In this document: in pieces, positions 4,537-38,513 of the stretch
Layout of the letters: the number at the start of each line of letters is the position of its first letter
How positions within the stretch are numbered: position 1 is the stretch's first letter
Assembly: GCA_025603075.1 (NCBI GenBank)
Contig: MU626269.1
Span: 62,001 to 126,000 of the forward strand
Length of the DNA stretch: 64,000 bases
Direction of reading: 5' to 3'
Source of the DNA: Neoconidiobolus thromboides FSU 785
Lineage: Eukaryota; Fungi; Entomophthoromycota
Notes under the pieces: generated by a model
Databases searched by the model: none
Told to the model about the DNA's origin: nothing
The model's input: only the letters and a program-made list of their open reading frames with translations
Position numbers and translations under genes: made by a program

Positions 4537-5811
4537 TTATTGAACAATTAATTCAATCCCGATTTTAAAAATTGATACTAAATTAGTGAGTTGTATTTCT
4601 TCGGAAGCTCCAATACTTAAATTATATCTATAAAAATTATTAATTTCTTTTAGAATTCTATTAATAAAATGCAAATATTACTCAATATTAGCCAATTTCG
4701 ACATTAAATAGCCAAGGAAATTAGTTGGTAATTTTAACTCTAACACATTTAAATAAAGTTGATCAATAATATCTTGAAGTGCTAGACCTCTTTCTATTTT
4801 TAAGGAATTAATATCTATAATAATAATAATAATTAATTAGATAGCTATATTCAGTTATAATAAAGCTACTATTATAAGCTAAAGAAAACTCTGCATTCAT
4901 TAACCAATCTCGAATTTTTTCAATTTCTTCTGGCAATGGTAAGCCAGTACATAAATAAACTTCTTTTTCAGTAATAAGATCAAATGCTGAATGACAAGCC
5001 TAAATATTAAAAAAATTTAAATTATAATCAAATTAAAATTAATTACTTGAAGGATATTAAGAACACGACGCATATCACCGTTGGATATCTTTAAAAGGGC
5101 CGTTTTTCCGTTATCTGTAATATTAACACTAATTCAAATAATAAGAAATAAACCACTATAGAATAATAATAAGTTTACTTTTCTTGTAAAGCAATAGCAT
5201 TTAATCGTGCTTCTATTTGTTCCGATTCTAATGGTGCAAATCGAAACTTTGTACAACGAGATTGTAAAGCAGGTATGATTTTACTTACATAATTACATAT
5301 GATACAAAATCGTACATTATTAGTATATTTTTCAATAACTTTATAAACAAATTTAATAAATTAAATAATTAAAACTAAAATATTAAATTTACTTCTTCTT
5401 AAAGCTGCTTGAGCGGCATTAGTCATTGCATCTGCTTCATCTAAGATAATTAATTTAAATTCATTACTATTTCGAAATTGATTAATACTCTTTTAGATAG
5501 TAAAATAAAATAAACTTGGCATACTTGAATAAATTTTTTGAACTTGCAAATTCTTTAATCCTTTCACGAACAACATCAATACCACGATCATCTGAAGCAT
5601 TTAACTTTCGTTTTAGTTAATATCTCCACTTTTTTTATAGAATAAAACAAAGCAATTCATATACTTACTTCTAATACTACATTAGTTAAATTCGATTTGT
5701 AAATTTTTTTAGCAATGGCTAAAATGGTAGATGTCTTCCCTGTTCCTGGTGGTCCATAAAACAACAAATGAGGTAATTTGTTAGCTTCAATAAAGTTGGA
5801 AACTATAATCA

Positions 5812-5845
<34 letters not shown>

Positions 5846-6041
5846 GTTGATATAAAAGTTAATATTTTTTAAAATTGAAATTAATTTTTACTTGTATCAA
5901 TAATATCTCCTTGAGAAACTAAATCTTCTAATTTGGATGGTCGATATTTTTCTACCCTAAAAAGTTCTAATTATTTGATTTTTATTATATATTTTATTAT
6001 TATTATTACCATGGTAAACTATCAGTTAGCTTTACTTCCAT
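4537..6041 (-). CDS. RFC3: Replication factor C small subunit (yeast Rfc3 / human RFC5 type), multi-exon
   Basis: Spliced by eye: [11 protein letters not shown]|VEKYRP, Walker [50 protein letters not shown] motif [22 protein letters not shown]. Confidence 0.92.
5812..5841. repeat. (ATT)10 microsatellite in an RFC3 intron
   Basis: Direct reading of the sequence. Confidence 0.9.
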
Positions 6042-7197
6042 TTTATATTGAAATTTTTAAAATCGATAAAAAATAAGAAGTTGATTTTATGGGAAGTTCG
6101 TAATTTTCTTAAAGTTTATTACGTAAAAACTAAAAATAGTAAATCATTCCAATGTTTAGATTTTGATTATCAGTTTTAAAATCTTATTAACATCCTTATT
6201 TAATTTAATAATAGTAATAATTGATTATATCATACTTGTTTCTAAGCTAATTGTTATATGAATCAATTTATCTCAGTAGAAGCCACTGTTAAGGAAAGTT
6301 TATACATAAATAAAATAAAATCAAAAACATTTTTAAGCTCACTTTTTTATCTTTATAATTGATAGTATCATATATATATTATAAGGGTTTTAAAGTCCTT
6401 GAGCTCAGTAGCATACTAACTAACAAGGTGATATAAAGTATTATAAGCTAAGGTAAGCCCAATACTTGAATAGTGAGTGAGGAAAACTTTAAAGTCTTGT
6501 TAAATAAATAAGAAACAAAGATGTAAATCAAGTTAACTAGACTAGTAAAGTTTAAAAGCATATTTCATGTTAGAAAATAAATAATAAAACTCTCAGTGAA
6601 TAAAATTTTTGAAAAAAGAGATTCAATTGCTTCTATACTTTGTATAAGTATAAGATACATTAGTTAATTTTGTTTCATATTTCTATTCAATACATACATA
6701 AAATTAATAAAAATTTTGATATTGATTTTAATTGTATCATTTTCTAATATGTATTCAGCTTGTATTGAATTTTATTAAGTTATAGTATTAAATTCTGGAA
6801 AGTATGGGATTTAATTAGTGATCCAACAATAATAAATAAGTAGAATAACTTTGCTAGCTATATTATAAAATAAATGCTATTTTTTTACTTTAGTAATTTT
6901 TTTATTTACCTTGTTATTTATATTATTAATTTTTTATTTATAAACTATATATTGAATAATTAGTTAAAAAATTGATACAAGTTTTAAAAAAAACCTCTTT
7001 TACTTATTGATTAATAATAATAAAATAGAAAAGCCCTTTATTTAGTACAAAAAGGTAAAAATAAATACTTTTAATTATAAGAAGTTATATAAACATATAG
7101 ACCATTTATTCATGAATTATATGAATATACAATGATAAAAACAAGCAGTAATTAGTAAGTAATATGATAAATTAATAACAAATAATAAATAATAAAT

Positions 7198-31131: not shown

Positions 31132-33842
31132 TTATAATAGTACACTCATTTGAAATTGATGCATGTCGTCTACATCATTTTCATCAATAATCAATAACTA
31201 ATTAATTTCCAATTTTGTTAATTAGTATGGTACAAGTAATATTTATATAGGTAATAAAAAGGAAATTTTATTTTTTAATCAAGCTGACGATTACAATCAA
31301 AATCCCAGTGCTCTTTCCACTTAGCAGCTTTACAGGCAGCTTTCGTCCAATTAAGCCCATAAGCTAGGTAAGAGAATTTTGCAAAGATGGAAACGGCAGC
31401 AACAGTAATAATCAAGGCAACAACCAATCTAAATTGAGGGCGTAAACGACGGATAGTAAGGTCTACAGTGGCAGCAAAAGCTAAAATTGAAAAATAAAGA
31501 GCTGGTAAATAATGATGAAGGAAGAGTTGACGCTTCATAATGAAAAAGGGGAAGATGTGTAAAACCCATCCCATAACAAAGAACCCAATTATATCAAAGT
31601 AACGCTGACGGAAAGCTAAAATAAATTAATATTTGCAGTTATAATTATAAAATGATTACCTAAGGATGCCAAGTTAACATTTCTTTTTGTCAAGATAAGT
31701 GAGAGAAATTGGAAAATCATATAAGCAATTATAGACATTGATCCAGCATACCAGATAAATGGATTACCAATAAGATAAACTTGGGCATGTTCTTTACCCC
31801 AGAAAGAGATACCCCTTCTTAAAAACGGCCAATCTTGTGGACGAGAATCATAAGGATGAGAAGAAGTCAAACCATTATTAGCAGTCCACATACGATGGTT
31901 CAATTCCATAAATTTAGACAAAAATCCAATCTTTCCATAAGATACTTTAGGTGAATCTTTTAACAATTCATGATCGTTAAATTCAACTACCCATTCAGAT
32001 CTAGGTTTTTGTCCATTTTTAATACAAATTACTTCTTGTTGTCCAAACCCCCATTCTGGTAACTTTTTGGGCCTTGAGTATAAAACACAACCGGTATTGA
32101 CGTGTACTAAACGGAATTTTGTATAAATTGCCATCAACCTTTCTTTAGATTCTGGATCACGTGAATCACCCTTTGAAATTTCAACTCTAAAGTTGTCATT
32201 TGAATCATCAAAGCCATAACCACTAATTAAGATAAATAAAATGAGCTAATAGTAATATATTATCATTTTTACCTGACTTCATTGACATAATCCTTTGAAG
32301 AAAATACTGGGCGAAGTTCATGGGAATGAAGGTGCTTTGAAGTGGTAACATGAATTAAACGAACAATATCCTTATCTTTAATATATTCAATGGTTTCAGT
32401 ATTATTCACTTCACTTTTAGAATCGTGAGGTTTAACAATGGTCCAAAAGTTATTATTATCACGGAAAGGATAAAGTGTAACTTGCTGTTCTATAAAAAGA
32501 ATTAATACTTGCTCCTAACTTTAAAAACGGTAAAACTTACGTTTACTCCCTCCTGGATAAGTGTGAGCATGAGAATGCAAATAACCGCCAGCAGTAGCTA
32601 CATGGTTGATCCTTAATTTTGAGCCGTAGATAACATCTATTAAGATAAATATTATCATATAGATTATTGATTTTTTATATTACCTTTTTTGGCATCGACT
32701 AAACCATTGCCTTCTAAAGTGTTTTGAAATTCAGATGACATTGAATTTGCAGATTCTGTATACTTATTAAGTACCATAAATTGAACTTGGAAAGTAAACA
32801 TGTAAATTGAAATTGGAATAATAATTAAACATAGTGCCCTAGCAACAAAATGTTGAAGATATTTTGACTAAATAAACGTTAGTTATTATATAAGATTAAT
32901 AATATTGTTTAGGCTTACTGGAGTAACTTTAAGATCTCCAACTAATTCCCAAAGTTGACGGATAGTAGAGATACCAATAAGTGCCACAGCAAATAATCCA
33001 ACCCATTTACAACTCAAAGTTAAACCAAGGAATATGCCGGTTGATGCTAATGAAAGCCACCAGCCTTTAGAAAAAGCTCTGTATCTTATTTTAGCTTAAT
33101 AGAATATAAACAAACTTGAAACTTACTTCTTTTCATAATTACAAAATACACTCCAAAATAAAACAGATAAAGCAGTAAATAGAATTAAAGGTGAGTCTAA
33201 GAATATATAACGTGATTGTGTAATCAAGGCATTTTCTAAATTAAAACATAAACAAAATTATAATAAAACAAAATAAATTAAATTACCAAATAAGACCAAA
33301 AGGGAGCCAAGTGCTGCAACTTCAGTAGTTAATCCAGAAACCTTTGAGGTGAGATAAGCAGTAGGAATTAAAAACCATCCAAAAAGAGCTTGAGCCAAAC
33401 GCATAGCAGTATAAGGTACATGATTACCAGCAAACTCTTTTCCAATTTTTTCAAAATCGAATGAACCATCAAATCCAAAAAACCAGCCAACTGCCGCTAT
33501 CATCAATTTAGCTAAAGGTGGATGGACATCAAAAAAATAGTCACGTTTAATGTATTTGGCTGCAAAGCCACCAAAATGGACTTCATCAAAGCTAAATAAA
33601 ATTTAGTATAAAATTCAGAGTTTTGATGAGAATATTTACACTACGGAAGCAGGTTGAGATATACGGAAGAAACGTACTAAAAGGCCTACGATCCCAATTA
33701 AACCAACCAAGTACCAGTCTCTTTTACTCATTGAAAAAAAATTATCCTGGTCATTTTTTACGGATGATTTACTATACTTGAACTCAGAATCATCATAGTC
33801 TATACTTGAATTTTCTTTTTCTTTTAAATACTCTTTTTCCAT
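31132..33842 (-). CDS. PMT1: Dolichyl-phosphate-mannose:protein O-mannosyltransferase, PMT1 subfamily, multi-exon
   Basis: FDEVHFGGFAAKY...FFDVHPPLAKL, MIR domains (LHSHAHTYP, FRLVHVNTGCVL), HPYDSRPQDWPFLRRGISFW, RQLFLHHYLPALYF. The 3' end is approximate. Confidence 0.9.
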
Positions 33843-34333
33843 TTTTATTTTTACAAAGAAATAAAGACTAGTTTATTTTTTTTAAAATATAGTAAAGACT
33901 GGTTTAATATGAACTATCAATTTAAACTTGGGTTTCGTCAACCAATTATTTACCGAAAACCAAAGCCTACTTTTGCTTTGAAGTTATATAAACCAATCAT
34001 ATCAAATTGAATACTATTAATTCTATTTTAATATATTTATTGGCCATTATAAATAAACTATAAAAATTATGATATTCCACTATTCAATCTATTTTATTTG
34101 ATATAGTAAGAACTATTTCATTTATTTTTAGACTTTTAGTTTAAAAAAACTATATGATTATAGTTATTCTAAAGTATAATTTATATAAAATTTCATATGA
34201 GCTAAAAATTTAATTTTTTCTCCAATAGTAAGTCTATTCTGATTTTCAAATTTAAACTCAAATCTAAAAAACTAAGAAACTGTTGACAGTAAACTCACTC
34301 AATCACTTTTTACAATTTTATAACAAGAATAAA

Positions 34334-35540
34334 ATGTATAATTAAACCTCATATCGAAAATTAGAAAACTAAATAATTAACTAGGGGTAGATATGTACAA
34401 TTAGTGATGGGGCCTGCAGGCTCTGGAAAAGTAACTAAATATTAAACTAATTTTTAAAATAAAAATTAATAAATAGTCAACTTATTGTAAAACAATGATA
34501 AACCATTTAATTACGCATAAGAGGACAGCGCACTTAGTTAACTTAGACCCTGCTGCTGAAGATTTCGAGTTTGAACCTACTATTGGTAAATTTTTGTAAT
34601 GTAGTAAGAAATATCAACCTTAATTGTTATAGATATAAGAGATTTAATTTCTTTGGAAGATGTAATGGAAGAGTTAAATTATGGTCCAAATGGTGGTCTG
34701 ATTTATTGTTTAGAGTATAACAAATACGTTTATTGCATAAATCATTTCTAATTTTATAAGGTTCTTGCTAAGTAACATTGATTGGTTTGAAGATGAGTTA
34801 GGAGATTATGAAGATGATTATTTGATTATTGATTGTCCAGGTAAATATATGCCATATAGTTACAAAAAAATGACCTCGTATTCATATTATAGGCCAAATC
34901 GAACTATACACTCATTTTCCAATAATGAGCAAGTTATGTGAGATGTTACAAAAATGGAATTTCAAAATATGTGGTATTTATTTATTAGAAAGTCAGTTTG
35001 TAGAAGATAAGAGTAAATTTTTTGCTGGGGTACTATCTGCCTTATCCGCTATGGTTAATTTGGAAATCCCTCATATCAATGTTTTTTCTAAAATGGACTT
35101 AGTTGCTGATAAAACGGGATGGGAAAGGTAACTCATTAAATAAATAAATTTGATATAAGATCTAATTTATAACAATATCTAACATTAAAGATTTATCAAC
35201 CCAGATCCATATTTAATAGATGAAACAATGGATGAAAGTGAAGACCCTAAATTTTTTAATTTAAATAAGGCTATTGGACAATTGGTAAGCACCATTTTAT
35301 CATTTAACTAGGATGAATTCGAATTCTGTTTTTTAGATCGATGACCATAGTTTAGTTAGCTTTTTGCCTTTAGACATAACTAGCGAAGACTCCATCGCAG
35401 CTATCTTATCTCATGCTGACAATGCGATTCAATATGGAGAAGATCAAGAACCTAACGAACCTGATGTACTTTTTTATATTGTTTACATATAGTTTAGCTA
35501 ATCGTTTTAGTTTGCGGAAGGCGAGGAGGAAGAGGAATAA
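34334..35540 (+). CDS. GPN3: GPN-loop GTPase 3, multi-exon; start codon split by intron 1
   Basis: AT|G GGT AGA TAT gives [16 protein letters not shown]; [57 protein letters not shown]. Confidence 0.92.
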
Positions 35541-35754
35541 TCAAGTGTTAAATATAGAAATTGAAAATACTAAAAGCTTTTTTTAATTAAATCTGAAAAA
35601 TATTACTTTTGATAGTTTCTTATGATTGTAGAAATTCATTAAATATTAAATACTGGCAATTTTATTTTGACTTAAACTAGTCATATCAGAGTACTTACAT
35701 GCCTCAATATAAGATGCAATTTATTTACAGCATTTTCCTTTATACGCAATTAAA

Positions 35755-36390
35755 CTAATCATATTTATTTAAATTCCAAAAAGCATTGATCGCAGCAATA
35801 CCAGCTGCACCATAACTAATGGCCTCCGAATAATCTTGAGCATTTAATCCTCCTAACGCATAGCATGGGTGGATACTAACTTTAGCATATTCACTAAACT
35901 TATCCCACCCTAACACATTATTACTTGGGCAAGAAATCGATGGTTTAACTGGCGATAAAACAATAAAACATAATGGCAAATTGTTGGCTATCTGTATTTC
36001 TTCTTCATTGTGACAAGAAGCAGCTATTTTTATAGTAGAGTTGGTTAATACTTCAACTTCATTTTTTATAGCATATATTTCTTTTAAGCATGTTCCAGTT
36101 AAATGCAATCCACCTAGTTTATACTTTCCTACTAGTCTACTCAAAACCCTAAACTCATTTTCGTTTGAACAGTTTAATAAAATTTTGTTCAAAACAAAAT
36201 CCTCATTAGACTTTAAACTTAGTGGCATTAATACTTTAGTTTCTAATTCTTCACTGGATAAATCTTTAAATCTTAATTGAAGCATTCCATCATTTTTTTC
36301 AAAACATCTAGATACTGAGTTTAATGTGTGCTCGGTATCCTTAAACCCACCACTAATGGTGTAATAATGACTATGTTTATCTTTTGTCAT
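35755..36390 (-). CDS. Stand-alone thiamine-phosphate synthase/TenI-fold protein of proteobacterial type
   Basis: LQLRFK, GLHL, ASCHN.EE, LSPVK.S.S.P...LGW..F, CYALGGL...D...A...GAAGIA.I.AFW; intronless. Confidence 0.85.
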   Translation of the reverse strand: MTKDKHSHYYTISGGFKDTEHTLNSVSRCFEKNDGMLQLRFKDLSSEELETKVLMPLSLKSNEDFVLNKILLNCSNENEFRVLSRLVGKYKLGGLHLTGTCLKEIYAIKNEVEVLTNSTIKIAASCHNEEEIQIANNLPLCFIVLSPVKPSISCPSNNVLGWDKFSEYAKVSIHPCYALGGLNAQDYSEAISYGAAGIAAINAFWNLNKYD

Positions 36391-36612
36391 CTAATTAAAA
36401 TAAAGTTTGTTTAGCAGTTTTAAATAAGTCGATAAAAATCACATGATTTTTAACCTGGGCCCCTTATTGGGCTGCCAAGATCATAAAGAGAATTAATAAA
36501 ATTCAGATTTTAAAACCAATTTAACTTTTATAAACTATTTAGATTAATCAAAATTGAACCTTTATTTACTTTCAACTAATAATAACAATAAAATTAAACT
36601 TTAAAATTTCCA

Positions 36613-37672
36613 ATGAACTGTACAATATGGATGAGATCGTATATTAATTTATATACAATAGCAATTATATTTAATATCTTAAATATCGGTTTTTACTGCC
36701 TAATTTTAGCTGCTTCAGTACTATGTATCCTTAATGAGGTAGTAAACGTAGTAGTAATCAACTCATTTTCCGGGTAAGTATTTCATATCGAATAATATTT
36801 ATACAACTAATCACTAGTTTAATAGAGTATCATGTCTTTTACTAGTTGTCAATGAAATCCATACTTCAAAGTTGACATACAACTACTTTAAATTTTTAGT
36901 CACTTTCCGAGGGCGAGGTTTACTGTATCTTTTATTATCTTTTATCGTGTATCAAAAGGGGATTGATTTCAATTTGGTAGTCACTTATTTTGGTGTTTCT
37001 TTAGGGCTGTTCTTTTTTATCATTTCTTTTGTGCCTCATATACTACCATTAAATGACTTGCGAAACAATTGGCGAAATTATCAAGGCTTTTTATATGAAA
37101 TTAACGATCCTAGCTTAGAAGAGGGTTACTTTAATACTACTGATATGACATCTACTTTATCACCTTTTGTTCCAAACGATGATACGCTGAGGCCAGGCAG
37201 AAAACAAAGCCAACTTAATAGTACATTAAGAGGGTCTAAAGAGTTACTACAACCCTCCCGCAAAAACGTTAATAGTAAGCTATTACCCATTAAAGGACAA
37301 GCTACATTGACTATGGAGATCAATCAAATGTTGTCTGATATTCAGTATTCGGATTTCGAGTTTAATAATAAGGATAAAAAGGAAAACGATAGGCAAACAG
37401 ACTTAACTGACGAATCTTCTATAAGAGACTATAGCGATGAGCCTCTCTCTAGTTCAAATCACATTCAGAATGGTGTTGCGAGTGAACAAAGTTTTTATGT
37501 TAGTGAAAATATTTCAAAATCGCTTTTAAACGACGGCGAAAACCTTGAAGGCGATAAGCATGATATAAGGGTTGACGAAAGTCCAGTTATTAAACAAAAT
37601 TTTACATTAAGGAAATCTCCATTTGGTCGCAAACAACTACCAAGTGTCCCGAAAGAGGGTTCTAGCCTATAA
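36613..37672 (+). CDS. TVP15/COPI-associated-like multi-pass membrane protein with long disordered C-tail; 2 exons
   Basis: Exon 1 from ATG 36613 (hydrophobic) with the intron after tccgg; YFKFLVTFRGRGLLYL motif typical of the COPI-associated family. Confidence 0.65.
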
Positions 37673-38415
37673 TTAGTTACTAGCTTTGAGTTTTTTTAAA
37701 ACGTTGTAAATAAATAATAGTGTATGTATTAGTTTATATTTGAAATTTGCTTTTTATTAATAAAGCGCTATAAAGATATAGATGAGTGTGATATAAATAT
37801 TTATAGGCTATTAAATTTTAACTAAAGCACCTTTATATTACATCAGGTTAATTTATTTTTAATAATTATAAATACCCCAAAAACATAACTCAATATATGC
37901 ATATATAATATTGAAATTTAAACTACCCTTAATCCATAAAAATGTTTTCATCAATTTAAAATTTTATTATAATTTAACTTAAATTAATATAATATAGAAC
38001 GTTTTTCTTAGATTTATTACAAAAATAGGCAAAATATCAAAATGAAAAAAGCATTTTCATTTAAATTTTAAACTTGGATTCATAAAGTAGTTTATTTTGA
38101 AAGATATTTTAATATCCTGGTTTTTAATGTTTTCAATATAATGTGATCTGTTTATCTGTAATATTTTTTCTTTAAGTTGTGATTATATAAGAAGTCTATA
38201 AGCATTTAAATTATTTAACAACCTACTACAAAACACACTAGTACAAAAGTAAAACATCCTAGAAAACCACTATTTTGACAAATTATAAGATTTGAAAATT
38301 ACTTTTAGATTTTACAAGGTGGACAATTCAGATTATTATAAAATTCCTTAAGATATTTGAAAGCGGAATTTTGGACCAAAATTTATATTATAGCTTAAGG
38401 TTTGGACAAAGGTAT

Positions 38416-38513
38416 GGGGATGTATTTTTGTGTTTAAGAATTTTACTAACAATTTTTCCACTTAAATAGTGCTTAAAAAATGGAAAAAATAATGAAATCA
38501 AAAAAACACTCCT
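38416..38513 (+). mobile_element. MITE copy 8
   Basis: ggggatgtatttttgtg...aaaaaacactcct; TSD GTAT/GTAT. Confidence 0.92.

Follow-up and report, generated by a model that had tools for sequence, protein, structure and literature searches.

A stand-alone TenI-like gene of Neoconidiobolus thromboides with scattered relatives among early-diverging fungi

The stretch of DNA analysed here, 64,000 nucleotides of the insect-associated fungus Neoconidiobolus thromboides FSU 785 (contig MU626269.1, positions 62,001 to 126,000 of the forward strand; the window), carries an intronless open reading frame (ORF) for a small TenI/ThiE-like protein. A preliminary description of the window, made from its letters alone, had flagged the gene as a candidate for horizontal gene transfer (HGT). 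The ORF is a genuine, transcribed, nuclear gene of N. thromboides, and by sequence comparison its protein can be assigned to an undescribed fungal clade (Spizellomycetales, Rhizophydiales, Basidiobolus and Neoconidiobolus) of the MutT-associated subfamily. The best joint explanation of the findings, to which we give a probability of about 0.6, is that of an expressed TenI-like paralogue, shared by this fungal clade, which would go back to one old bacterial acquisition and would carry out a metal-independent chemistry. The gene lies as follows.

35755..36390, reverse strand: stand-alone TenI/ThiE-like TIM-barrel coding sequence, 211 amino acids plus stop; ATG at 36390-36388, stop codon at 35757-35755, no intron

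Results

Protein family and fold

The protein matches Pfam PF02581 (TMP-TENI) over residues 89-203 with 64.4 bits (E 1.2e-17), above the gathering threshold of 27 bits. Its best NCBIfam model is NF006530/PRK08999 'Nudix family hydrolase', matched at positions 133-314/315 with an E value of 4e-31. The whole-protein score for this model, 108 bits, stays below the cut-off of 245 because half of the model, the Nudix part, is absent; no Nudix domain was matched by Pfam in the ORF protein, in which the barrel begins at residue 9 and only 8 residues precede it. The models for thiE equivalogs score far lower, at 14-36 bits against cut-offs of 145-350, with 32 bits for TIGR00693 (ThiE; cut-off 145.1) and 35.7 for the best PRK thiE model (cut-off 335). 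Profile matches to the ThiE structures 1XI3 and 1G4T in PDB have E values of 1e-26 to 1e-24.

An AlphaFold2 model based on a 73-sequence alignment forms a (beta/alpha)8 barrel from residue 9, with a predicted local distance difference score (pLDDT) of 94.1 and a predicted template modelling score (pTM) of 0.90. When the model was compared with PDB, Bacillus subtilis TenI came out on top (3QH2: Z 20.3, root-mean-square deviation (rmsd) 2.2 A over 180 residues; 1YAD: Z 19.8), whereas ThiE structures gave Z 17.2-18.8 and rmsd 3.0-3.2 A. Foldseek TM-scores likewise were 0.73/0.78 for TenI versus about 0.65/0.61 for ThiE, and the structural neighbours in the ESM Atlas are Nudix+TMP-TENI fusions of Pseudomonadota. 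The ORF thus encodes a roughly 24-kDa barrel of the ThiE/TenI superfamily, from the subfamily that is fused C-terminally to MutT/Nudix in proteobacteria.

The resemblance to three known systems is of different kinds. With the C-terminal domain of PRK08999 and PA4400 the ORF protein shares QxR(x)K, N73, G-x-H96-L, S-C-H127, LSP, LGW, ALGG and GIAAI..W, and both are missing the metal ligands of ThiE; it differs in having no Nudix domain, in carrying S-x-[ST]-C-P-S instead of T-x-S-H-P, and in its position on a separate, long-stemmed fungal branch. B. subtilis TenI (1YAD/3QH2) is the closest solved structure, also of about 200 amino acids and also devoid of synthase chemistry, yet its sequence identity is only 14-17%. 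The ORF protein has a histidine, H127, at the end of strand 5 that is invariant in 73 members and may correspond in position to the catalytic His122 of TenI. With ThiE and the ThiE domain of THI6, finally, it shares the superfamily and fold, QxRxK, and the two loops (GG and G..A.I) that bind phosphate.

Active-site residues

Two profile alignments, one with the THI6 of this genome (ThiE domain) and one with B. subtilis ThiE, gave the equivalent residues; the ORF protein is given first in each line.

Q38-L-R40-F-K42: QLREK in THI6/ThiE; retained
N73-C74: N-D in THI6/ThiE; first Mg ligand gone
H96-L-T-G-T-C101: H-I-G-Q-E-D in THI6/ThiE; second Mg ligand gone
S125-C126-H127: S-V-K in THI6, S-A-H in B. 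subtilis ThiE
P-S151-I-S153-C154: P-T-N-T-K in THI6/ThiE; lysine gone
L-G180-G181: I-S-G in THI6/ThiE
G197-I-A-A-I201-N202: G-V-A-M-V-S in THI6/ThiE

From the literature on 2TPS/1G4T we take Asp93 and Asp112 of B. subtilis ThiE to be the residues aligned to C74 and C101, and Lys159 the one aligned to C154. In neither fungi nor bacteria does Asp rank with the four most frequent residues at position 74, and at position 101 it occurs in 1/12 fungi. The Q-x-R-x-K motif (Q38, R40 and K42) and the phosphate loops of ThiE (G180-G181 and G197/A199/I201) are present and conserved. R40, H127, G180, G181 and G197 are invariant across 73 family members, and at least 90% conservation is found for N73, G94, H96, S125, C126, P147, P155, G161, W162, F165, L179, G194, A199, I201 and W205; the ORF protein retains every one of them. 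Most of these residues, though not G161, W162, F165 and W205, are found at the C-terminal end of a predicted strand or directly behind it, and it is there that TIM barrels have their active sites.

These alignments agree with the preliminary description, which had matched the motifs to the TMP-TENI domain fused to MutT/Nudix (now seen in the C-terminal domain of NF006530, E 4e-31, and in the fusion relatives) and had noted ND changed to NC, GQxD changed to TGTC and the absence of the TxTK lysine, all three of which recur in the profile alignments.

Fungal relatives and their signature

With the single sequence as query, a word-index search of proteins recovered only the ORF protein itself. An exhaustive HMMER search of 1.84 billion representatives gave 1,845 proteins at E<=1e-3. 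The top matches are stand-alone proteins of about 194-215 amino acids with 36-39% identity; next come many proteins of 306-382 amino acids that align from about residue 125 and have the Pfam architecture Nudix+TMP-TENI. The top stand-alone matches that could be named come from Globomyces pollinis-pini, Globomyces sp., Terramyces sp., Gaertneriomyces semiglobifer, Geranomyces variabilis (three strains), Thoreauomyces humboldtii (partial), Phlyctochytrium arcticum, Spizellomyces punctatus, S. 'palustris' and Basidiobolus ranarum. Three metagenomic or Sequence Read Archive proteins (P0002, P0010 and P0155) are also among the top stand-alone matches. P0002 is the best single match (39%) and is encoded on a 20.8-kb metagenome contig of 26.8% GC with fragmentary eukaryote-type gene calls. 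The closest bacterial sequence has 36% identity and a lower score than the fungal ones.

A profile of the fungal proteins separates them from everything else, with at least 181 bits for fungi and at most 141 for all others. Substitutions at three positions mark them.

Position 154: Cys in 12/12 fungi, His in 58/61 bacteria
Position 151: Ser in 12/12 fungi, Thr in 56/61 bacteria
Position 156: Ser in 12/12 fungi, Asp, Glu, Gly or Gln in bacteria

In sequence, the fungal set is thus characterised by Thr>Ser and His>Cys, which turn T-x-S-H-P into S-x-[ST]-C-P-S, and among 152 proteins [ST]-C-P-S without the bacterial S-H-P is restricted to the fungal group. The chytrid and Basidiobolus stand-alone TMP-TENI proteins (KAI8896315.1 of Globomyces, KAK9762269.1 of Basidiobolus ranarum and KAI9008418.1 of Gaertneriomyces) share clade, motif and single exon with the ORF; they are about 31-39% identical to its protein, and some have N-terminal or internal extensions (238-285 amino acids). 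In all six fungal lineages read, the gene consists of a single exon and its neighbours are ordinary intron-bearing eukaryotic genes. No synteny was found between the window and the P0002 contig, nor among the fungal loci, and the GC content of the locus follows each host, from 0.27 to 0.50. No paper describing this fungal family was found.

The Spizellomyces annotations have a different architecture. SPPG_09270 of S. punctatus (KQ257457.1, L005:4001-6753) is a protein of 758 amino acids in which an SNM1/Artemis-type nuclease (metallo-beta-lactamase plus DRMBL) is joined to the TenI-like domain, and it has a twin of 763 amino acids in S. 'palustris'. This fusion may be an annotation merger of two genes, because in-frame Met codons occur in the exon with the domain (ORF 5351-6235) some 20 residues ahead of the barrel and because P0010, a close relative, is stand-alone. 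If true, the fusion would be a second, independent joining of the domain to a DNA-damage enzyme.

Phylogeny

In a tree of 131 rows the fungal group lies on one side of a branch with a Shimodaira-Hasegawa-like approximate likelihood ratio (SH-aLRT) support of 99. A tree of 72 rows, computed under LG+C20+F+G4 with posterior mean site frequencies (PMSF), recovers the fungal clade at 100/99 and splits the whole subfamily from canonical ThiE at 100/100. The rows for canonical ThiE in this tree are the genome's own THI6 and the corresponding domain of P0011; ten bacterial rows with very long branches were left out, and the bootstrap was not fully converged. Branching within the fungal clade is weak; the ORF protein, P0002 and Terramyces group at only 87/63.

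The free tree nests the fungi within bacteria, with two bacterial rows branching first, but this nesting is unsupported and the approximately unbiased (AU) test allows or favours the alternative. When fungi and outgroups were constrained to one side, so that fungi are sister to all bacterial members, the tree was 19 log-likelihood units (lnL) better than the free-search tree and had a p-AU of 0.70. Part of this result may be due to long-branch attraction of the fungal stem to the outgroup.

Nudix-fused and stand-alone bacterial forms are intermingled in the 72-row tree, which needs 15 changes between them. One bacterial stand-alone member, P0159 (198 amino acids, L010:5001-5597, on a marine metagenome scaffold), lies in an lpxC-secA-argJ-[..]-zapD-coaE-pilD-pilC locus, where it fills the slot between argJ and zapD that we take to be the usual position of mutT in gammaproteobacteria. 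The intermingling and this locus together indicate that the Nudix half was lost or gained repeatedly within bacteria, some of which keep only the TenI-like half.

One protein of the set has an unusual composition. P0011 (UniRef100_A0A6A7G4H4, labelled Hirondellea gigas) comprises, in 680 amino acids, HIT/DcpS_C, a canonical, full-scoring ThiE domain (264-446) and a C-terminal domain of the MutT-associated subfamily. The last of these groups with the bacterial rows. A microbe present in the amphipod sample may be the source of this protein, which physically ties the MutT-associated subfamily to true ThiE.

Locus, linkage and transcription

The ORF stands between two intron-bearing genes.

35511..36454, strand not assigned: unspliced coverage by an RNA contig (run X5, record 11), which also runs into spliced GPN3
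36391..36612, strand not assigned: divergent intergenic stretch of 222 bp between the ORF and the TVP15-like gene; presumed bidirectional promoter, a role read from the arrangement
34334..35540, forward strand: GPN3, a GPN-loop GTPase gene interrupted by eight short GT..AG introns (PF03029 matched in the exons); tail-to-tail with the ORF
36613..37672, forward strand: TVP15-like (COPI_assoc) gene, PF08507, intron 36773-36824 (joint 36772>36825); head-to-head with the ORF

GPN3 ends with a stop codon at 35538-35540, and 214 bp separate its end from that of the ORF; all eight of its splice joints are seen in RNA contigs, from two runs. Its start codon is split by intron 1 (AT at 34334-34335, a GT..AG intron at 34336-34384 and G at 34385), and the joint 34335>34385 is present in RNA contigs of both runs. 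Farther left, on the GPN3 side, lies a PMT mannosyltransferase. The only Rfam match near the gene, SCARNA7 with an E value of 0.5, is at chance level. The composition of the ORF, with a GC content of 0.316 and 0.231 at third codon positions (GC3), is that of the host: the window has a GC content of 0.28 and the exons of two neighbouring housekeeping genes 0.33-0.36. The arrangement that had been read from the letters therefore holds. The ORF call and the splice joints in RNA contigs bear out an intronless frame of 211 codons amid intron-bearing genes, the distances of 214 bp (tail-to-tail) and 222 bp (head-to-head, given as about 220 bp) match, and the AT content is indeed host-like.

The linkage of the ORF to GPN3, which the preliminary description had suggested confirming, is supported by two further DNA assemblies from other studies. 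The region 33600-38400 is contained in a single contig of about 17.6 kb in X2, with 8 substitutions, and likewise in X3, with 5. Transcription is seen in the X5 contig, which bears all GPN3 splice joints and so derives from RNA, and then runs unspliced from 35511 to 36454 across the whole ORF. As one RNA contig joins spliced GPN3 and the ORF, the convergent transcripts must overlap or abut within the 214-bp spacer; the contigs themselves carry no information on transcript strand or expression level. The X5 contig terminates in sequencing adapter at 36454, 64 nt upstream of the ATG of the ORF, and this position may be the 5' end of its mRNA.

Contigs of run X6, from a differently labelled organism that is several per cent diverged, also contain the ORF. 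Pairs of X6 contigs over 35892-36360 differ in their mismatches (2 versus 9 in 212 nt; 2 versus 22 in 263 nt), which suggests that the sample holds two diverged alleles, strains or species. Five substitutions are listed in the ORF, four of them synonymous at third positions and one a change of Ser to Asn. The mostly synonymous variation and the retention of all conserved residues argue for a functioning rather than a decaying protein.

That the gene is a bacterial contaminant or an assembly chimera is so improbable that it can be set aside. Apart from the match to a bacterial-type family nothing speaks for it, and against it stand the host-like GC content of about 0.32, three assemblies from different studies in which spliced fungal genes share a contig with the ORF, and RNA contigs that pass from spliced GPN3 into the ORF. 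The independent assemblies and the RNA contigs exclude it.

Thiamine pathway and predicted chemistry

A CCT-eta exon of the window matches the T-complex eta subunit of N. thromboides FSU 785 with 100% identity, and the second-best match, in Massospora cicadina, has 84%. The host assembly comprises 24.6 Mb in 799 contigs, and its thiamine genes lie on contigs C321, C125 and C81. On C321 it has a canonical THI6 (TMP-TENI + HK), in keeping with the preliminary description's remark that fungal ThiE normally occurs in the Thi6 ThiE-ThiM fusion. THI4 and NMT1/THI5 are present as well; THI4 has two exons parted by an intron-sized gap. From this gene set, N. thromboides is probably a thiamine prototroph. 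As THI6, THI4 and NMT1 are all present, the ORF would be an extra paralogue and not the fungus's thiamine-phosphate synthase. The Mg-dependent substitution of ThiE, in which pyrophosphate leaves, would be excluded by the loss of the Mg2+-ligand aspartates and of the TxTK lysine. We infer that the ORF protein is not a thiamine-phosphate synthase (EC 2.5.1.3).

The residues that are kept would allow a different chemistry. The loops after strands 6, 7 and 8 (S146-P147, G180-G181 and G197/A199/I201) may form a retained phosphate grip, to which the preserved Q38-x-R40-x-K42 and, at strand ends, the near-invariant S125-C126-H127 and H96 would be added. A small phosphate-bearing molecule, thiazole-like or similar, could then be bound at the mouth of the barrel, and His, Cys and Arg side chains might carry out metal-independent acid/base chemistry, i.e. 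a tautomerisation or isomerisation, in the manner of TenI. TenI is said, in work by Hazra and colleagues from 2011, to tautomerise thiazole phosphate carboxylate.

A phenotype is on record for a fused bacterial relative. The deletion of PA4400 in P. aeruginosa slows growth on M9 medium, growth is restored by thiamine, and the C-terminal part of the protein has been proposed to take part in thiamine synthesis (PMC7424265). This was the only paper found on the function of the fused domain, and a non-essential, rate-enhancing role of the PA4400 domain would fit a TenI-like function. Separately, when the N. thromboides genome was searched for a NUDIX_4 partner of bacterial type, a single weak match came up, on another contig.

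Discussion

Several observations weigh against an old bacterial acquisition with TenI-like chemistry. On the side of descent, the tree with fungi outside bacteria is not rejected and scores better; the sequence data establish no nesting, donor or direction of transfer, and the within-family tree is largely unresolved. The weak branching inside the fungal clade seems unable to separate vertical descent from fungus-to-fungus transfer, and the distribution of the family, as read from the protein-search matches, looks patchy rather than broad. On the side of function, the NCBIfam TenI model NF005819 gives the ORF protein 16.8 bits against a cut-off of 251, and no thiamine pyrophosphate (TPP) riboswitch or other Rfam family was found over 33500-38500. 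Fungal thiazole is made by THI4, whose product is already aromatic and is not the tautomer that TenI uses; to our knowledge fungi are without the ThiG route whose product TenI aromatises. It is therefore not obvious what a TenI-type tautomerase would act on in this pathway. No activity has been demonstrated for the domain in any member of the subfamily, so that its function is wholly inferred.

The transfer proposed in the preliminary description was an ameliorated, lineage-specific one, from a beta- or gammaproteobacterium, with the domain cut from its Nudix partner. It has in its favour that the proteobacterial fusion is the best curated family, that the gene is intronless among intron-rich neighbours and that the word-index search gave no close relative. 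In the exhaustive search, however, fungal stand-alone proteins come first (36-39% identity), the nearest bacterial sequence is no closer (36%, with a lower score), and the fungal clade (100/99) shares derived residues, so that a candidate particular to this genome is not supported. Nor is it supported that the domain was freed from its Nudix partner here, its closest relatives being stand-alone fungal genes; stand-alone bacterial forms exist too, and the loss of Nudix need not be fungal. The alien index that had been proposed as a check, for which other fungi were taken as in-group, comes to ln(3.0e-28) - ln(2.2e-21) = about -16 (the best named fungal E value against that of the best Nudix fusion, taken as bacterial); such a gene is not 'alien', and a standard screen would pass over it. 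We regard a lineage-specific transfer as very unlikely, and a recent transfer into this genome is, as far as sequences can tell, not what happened. The HGT idea survives in part, in that an ancient bacterial origin is plausible yet unproven. The grouping with a broad fungal clade, which had been named as evidence against transfer, is largely borne out: the protein does fall into a fungal clade, but the clade is patchy and not broad.

The opposite possibility is that there was no transfer at all and that the gene is an old ThiE/TenI paralogue of the fungal or an earlier eukaryotic ancestor, kept by a few early-diverging lineages. It is consistent with fungi as sister to the entire bacterial radiation in the constrained tree (AU p 0.70; 19 lnL better), with a clade that spans Chytridiomycota and entomophthoralean and basidiobolean fungi, and with the long stem and the wholly host-like composition. 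We nevertheless consider it improbable, since many independent losses would be required, the gene is intronless in every lineage examined despite intron-rich host genomes, the family is abundant and diverse in bacteria, and no non-fungal eukaryote with the fungal motif occurs among the best 150 of the 1,845 matches. A single ancient bacterial origin is the more economical reading, plausible on the sequence data and unproven. It is favoured because the family is large and diverse in bacteria, because the top matches include no non-fungal eukaryote with the fungal motif, and because the gene is single-exon in all six fungal lineages beside intron-bearing neighbours; the absence of shared synteny and a GC content that tracks each host would make the event old. 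An early fungus may thus have acquired the domain once from a bacterium, and descent with many losses, possibly with some fungus-to-fungus spread, would have followed. Ten bacterial or metagenomic relatives yielded no taxon names in cluster look-ups, and the donor lineage can be named only as mostly Gammaproteobacteria.

For the function, a second and redundant thiamine-phosphate synthase would agree with the Pfam TMP-TENI membership and with the label 'thiamine phosphate synthase superfamily' that fungal relatives carry in the sources. With both Mg-ligand Asp residues and the TxTK Lys replaced, thiE equivalog scores far under their cut-offs and a canonical THI6 in the genome, it is highly improbable. 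A role in the nucleotide pool or in DNA damage deserves more weight, although we still hold it to be unlikely: the domain would bind or process a nucleoside monophosphate made by MutT (e.g. 8-oxo-dGMP), and the free-standing fungal enzymes would have retained this activity. The fusion to MutT in bacteria points this way, as do the bacterial stand-alone copy exactly in the secA-argJ-[mutT slot]-zapD-coaE locus, the two Spizellomyces annotations that join the domain to an SNM1/Artemis-type nuclease and the monophosphate-binding site retained in the barrel. Yet the Spizellomyces fusion may result from two genes annotated as one, the sole phenotype for this part of PA4400 is thiamine-responsive, and the nearest folds, TenI and ThiE, are binders of thiazole phosphate. 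The TenI-like, metal-independent chemistry is preferred over both.

A more specific proposal, which we put forward only tentatively, is that these proteins form a new eukaryotic branch of MutT-associated TenI-like enzymes that arose from one early bacterial acquisition and have a remodelled site; they would perform a hitherto overlooked repair or salvage step, with either damaged phosphates of thiazole or thiamine or oxidised nucleoside monophosphates as substrates. If this is true, a few zoosporic and entomophthoralean lineages would have kept the domain for hundreds of millions of years; the remodelled site would be the change from His to Cys at the position of ThiE Lys159, beside the conserved S-C-H; and the repair or salvage step would also explain why proteobacteria weld the domain to MutT. 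For the MutT-fused domain of many proteobacteria, the thiamine-responsive phenotype of the PA4400 deletion is the sole hint of an activity, and a free-standing eukaryotic version, parted from the Nudix half, offers a clean handle on it. One fungus with a homologue, Spizellomyces punctatus, is amenable to genetics.

For annotation, the proteins of the fungal clade should not be named thiamine-phosphate synthase, and the case illustrates that an 'HGT candidate' called from a single genome can turn out, when chytrid genomes are added, to belong to an old and patchy family of fungi. The gene of N. thromboides is one more of the few candidates for ancient bacterial genes that only early-diverging fungi have retained.

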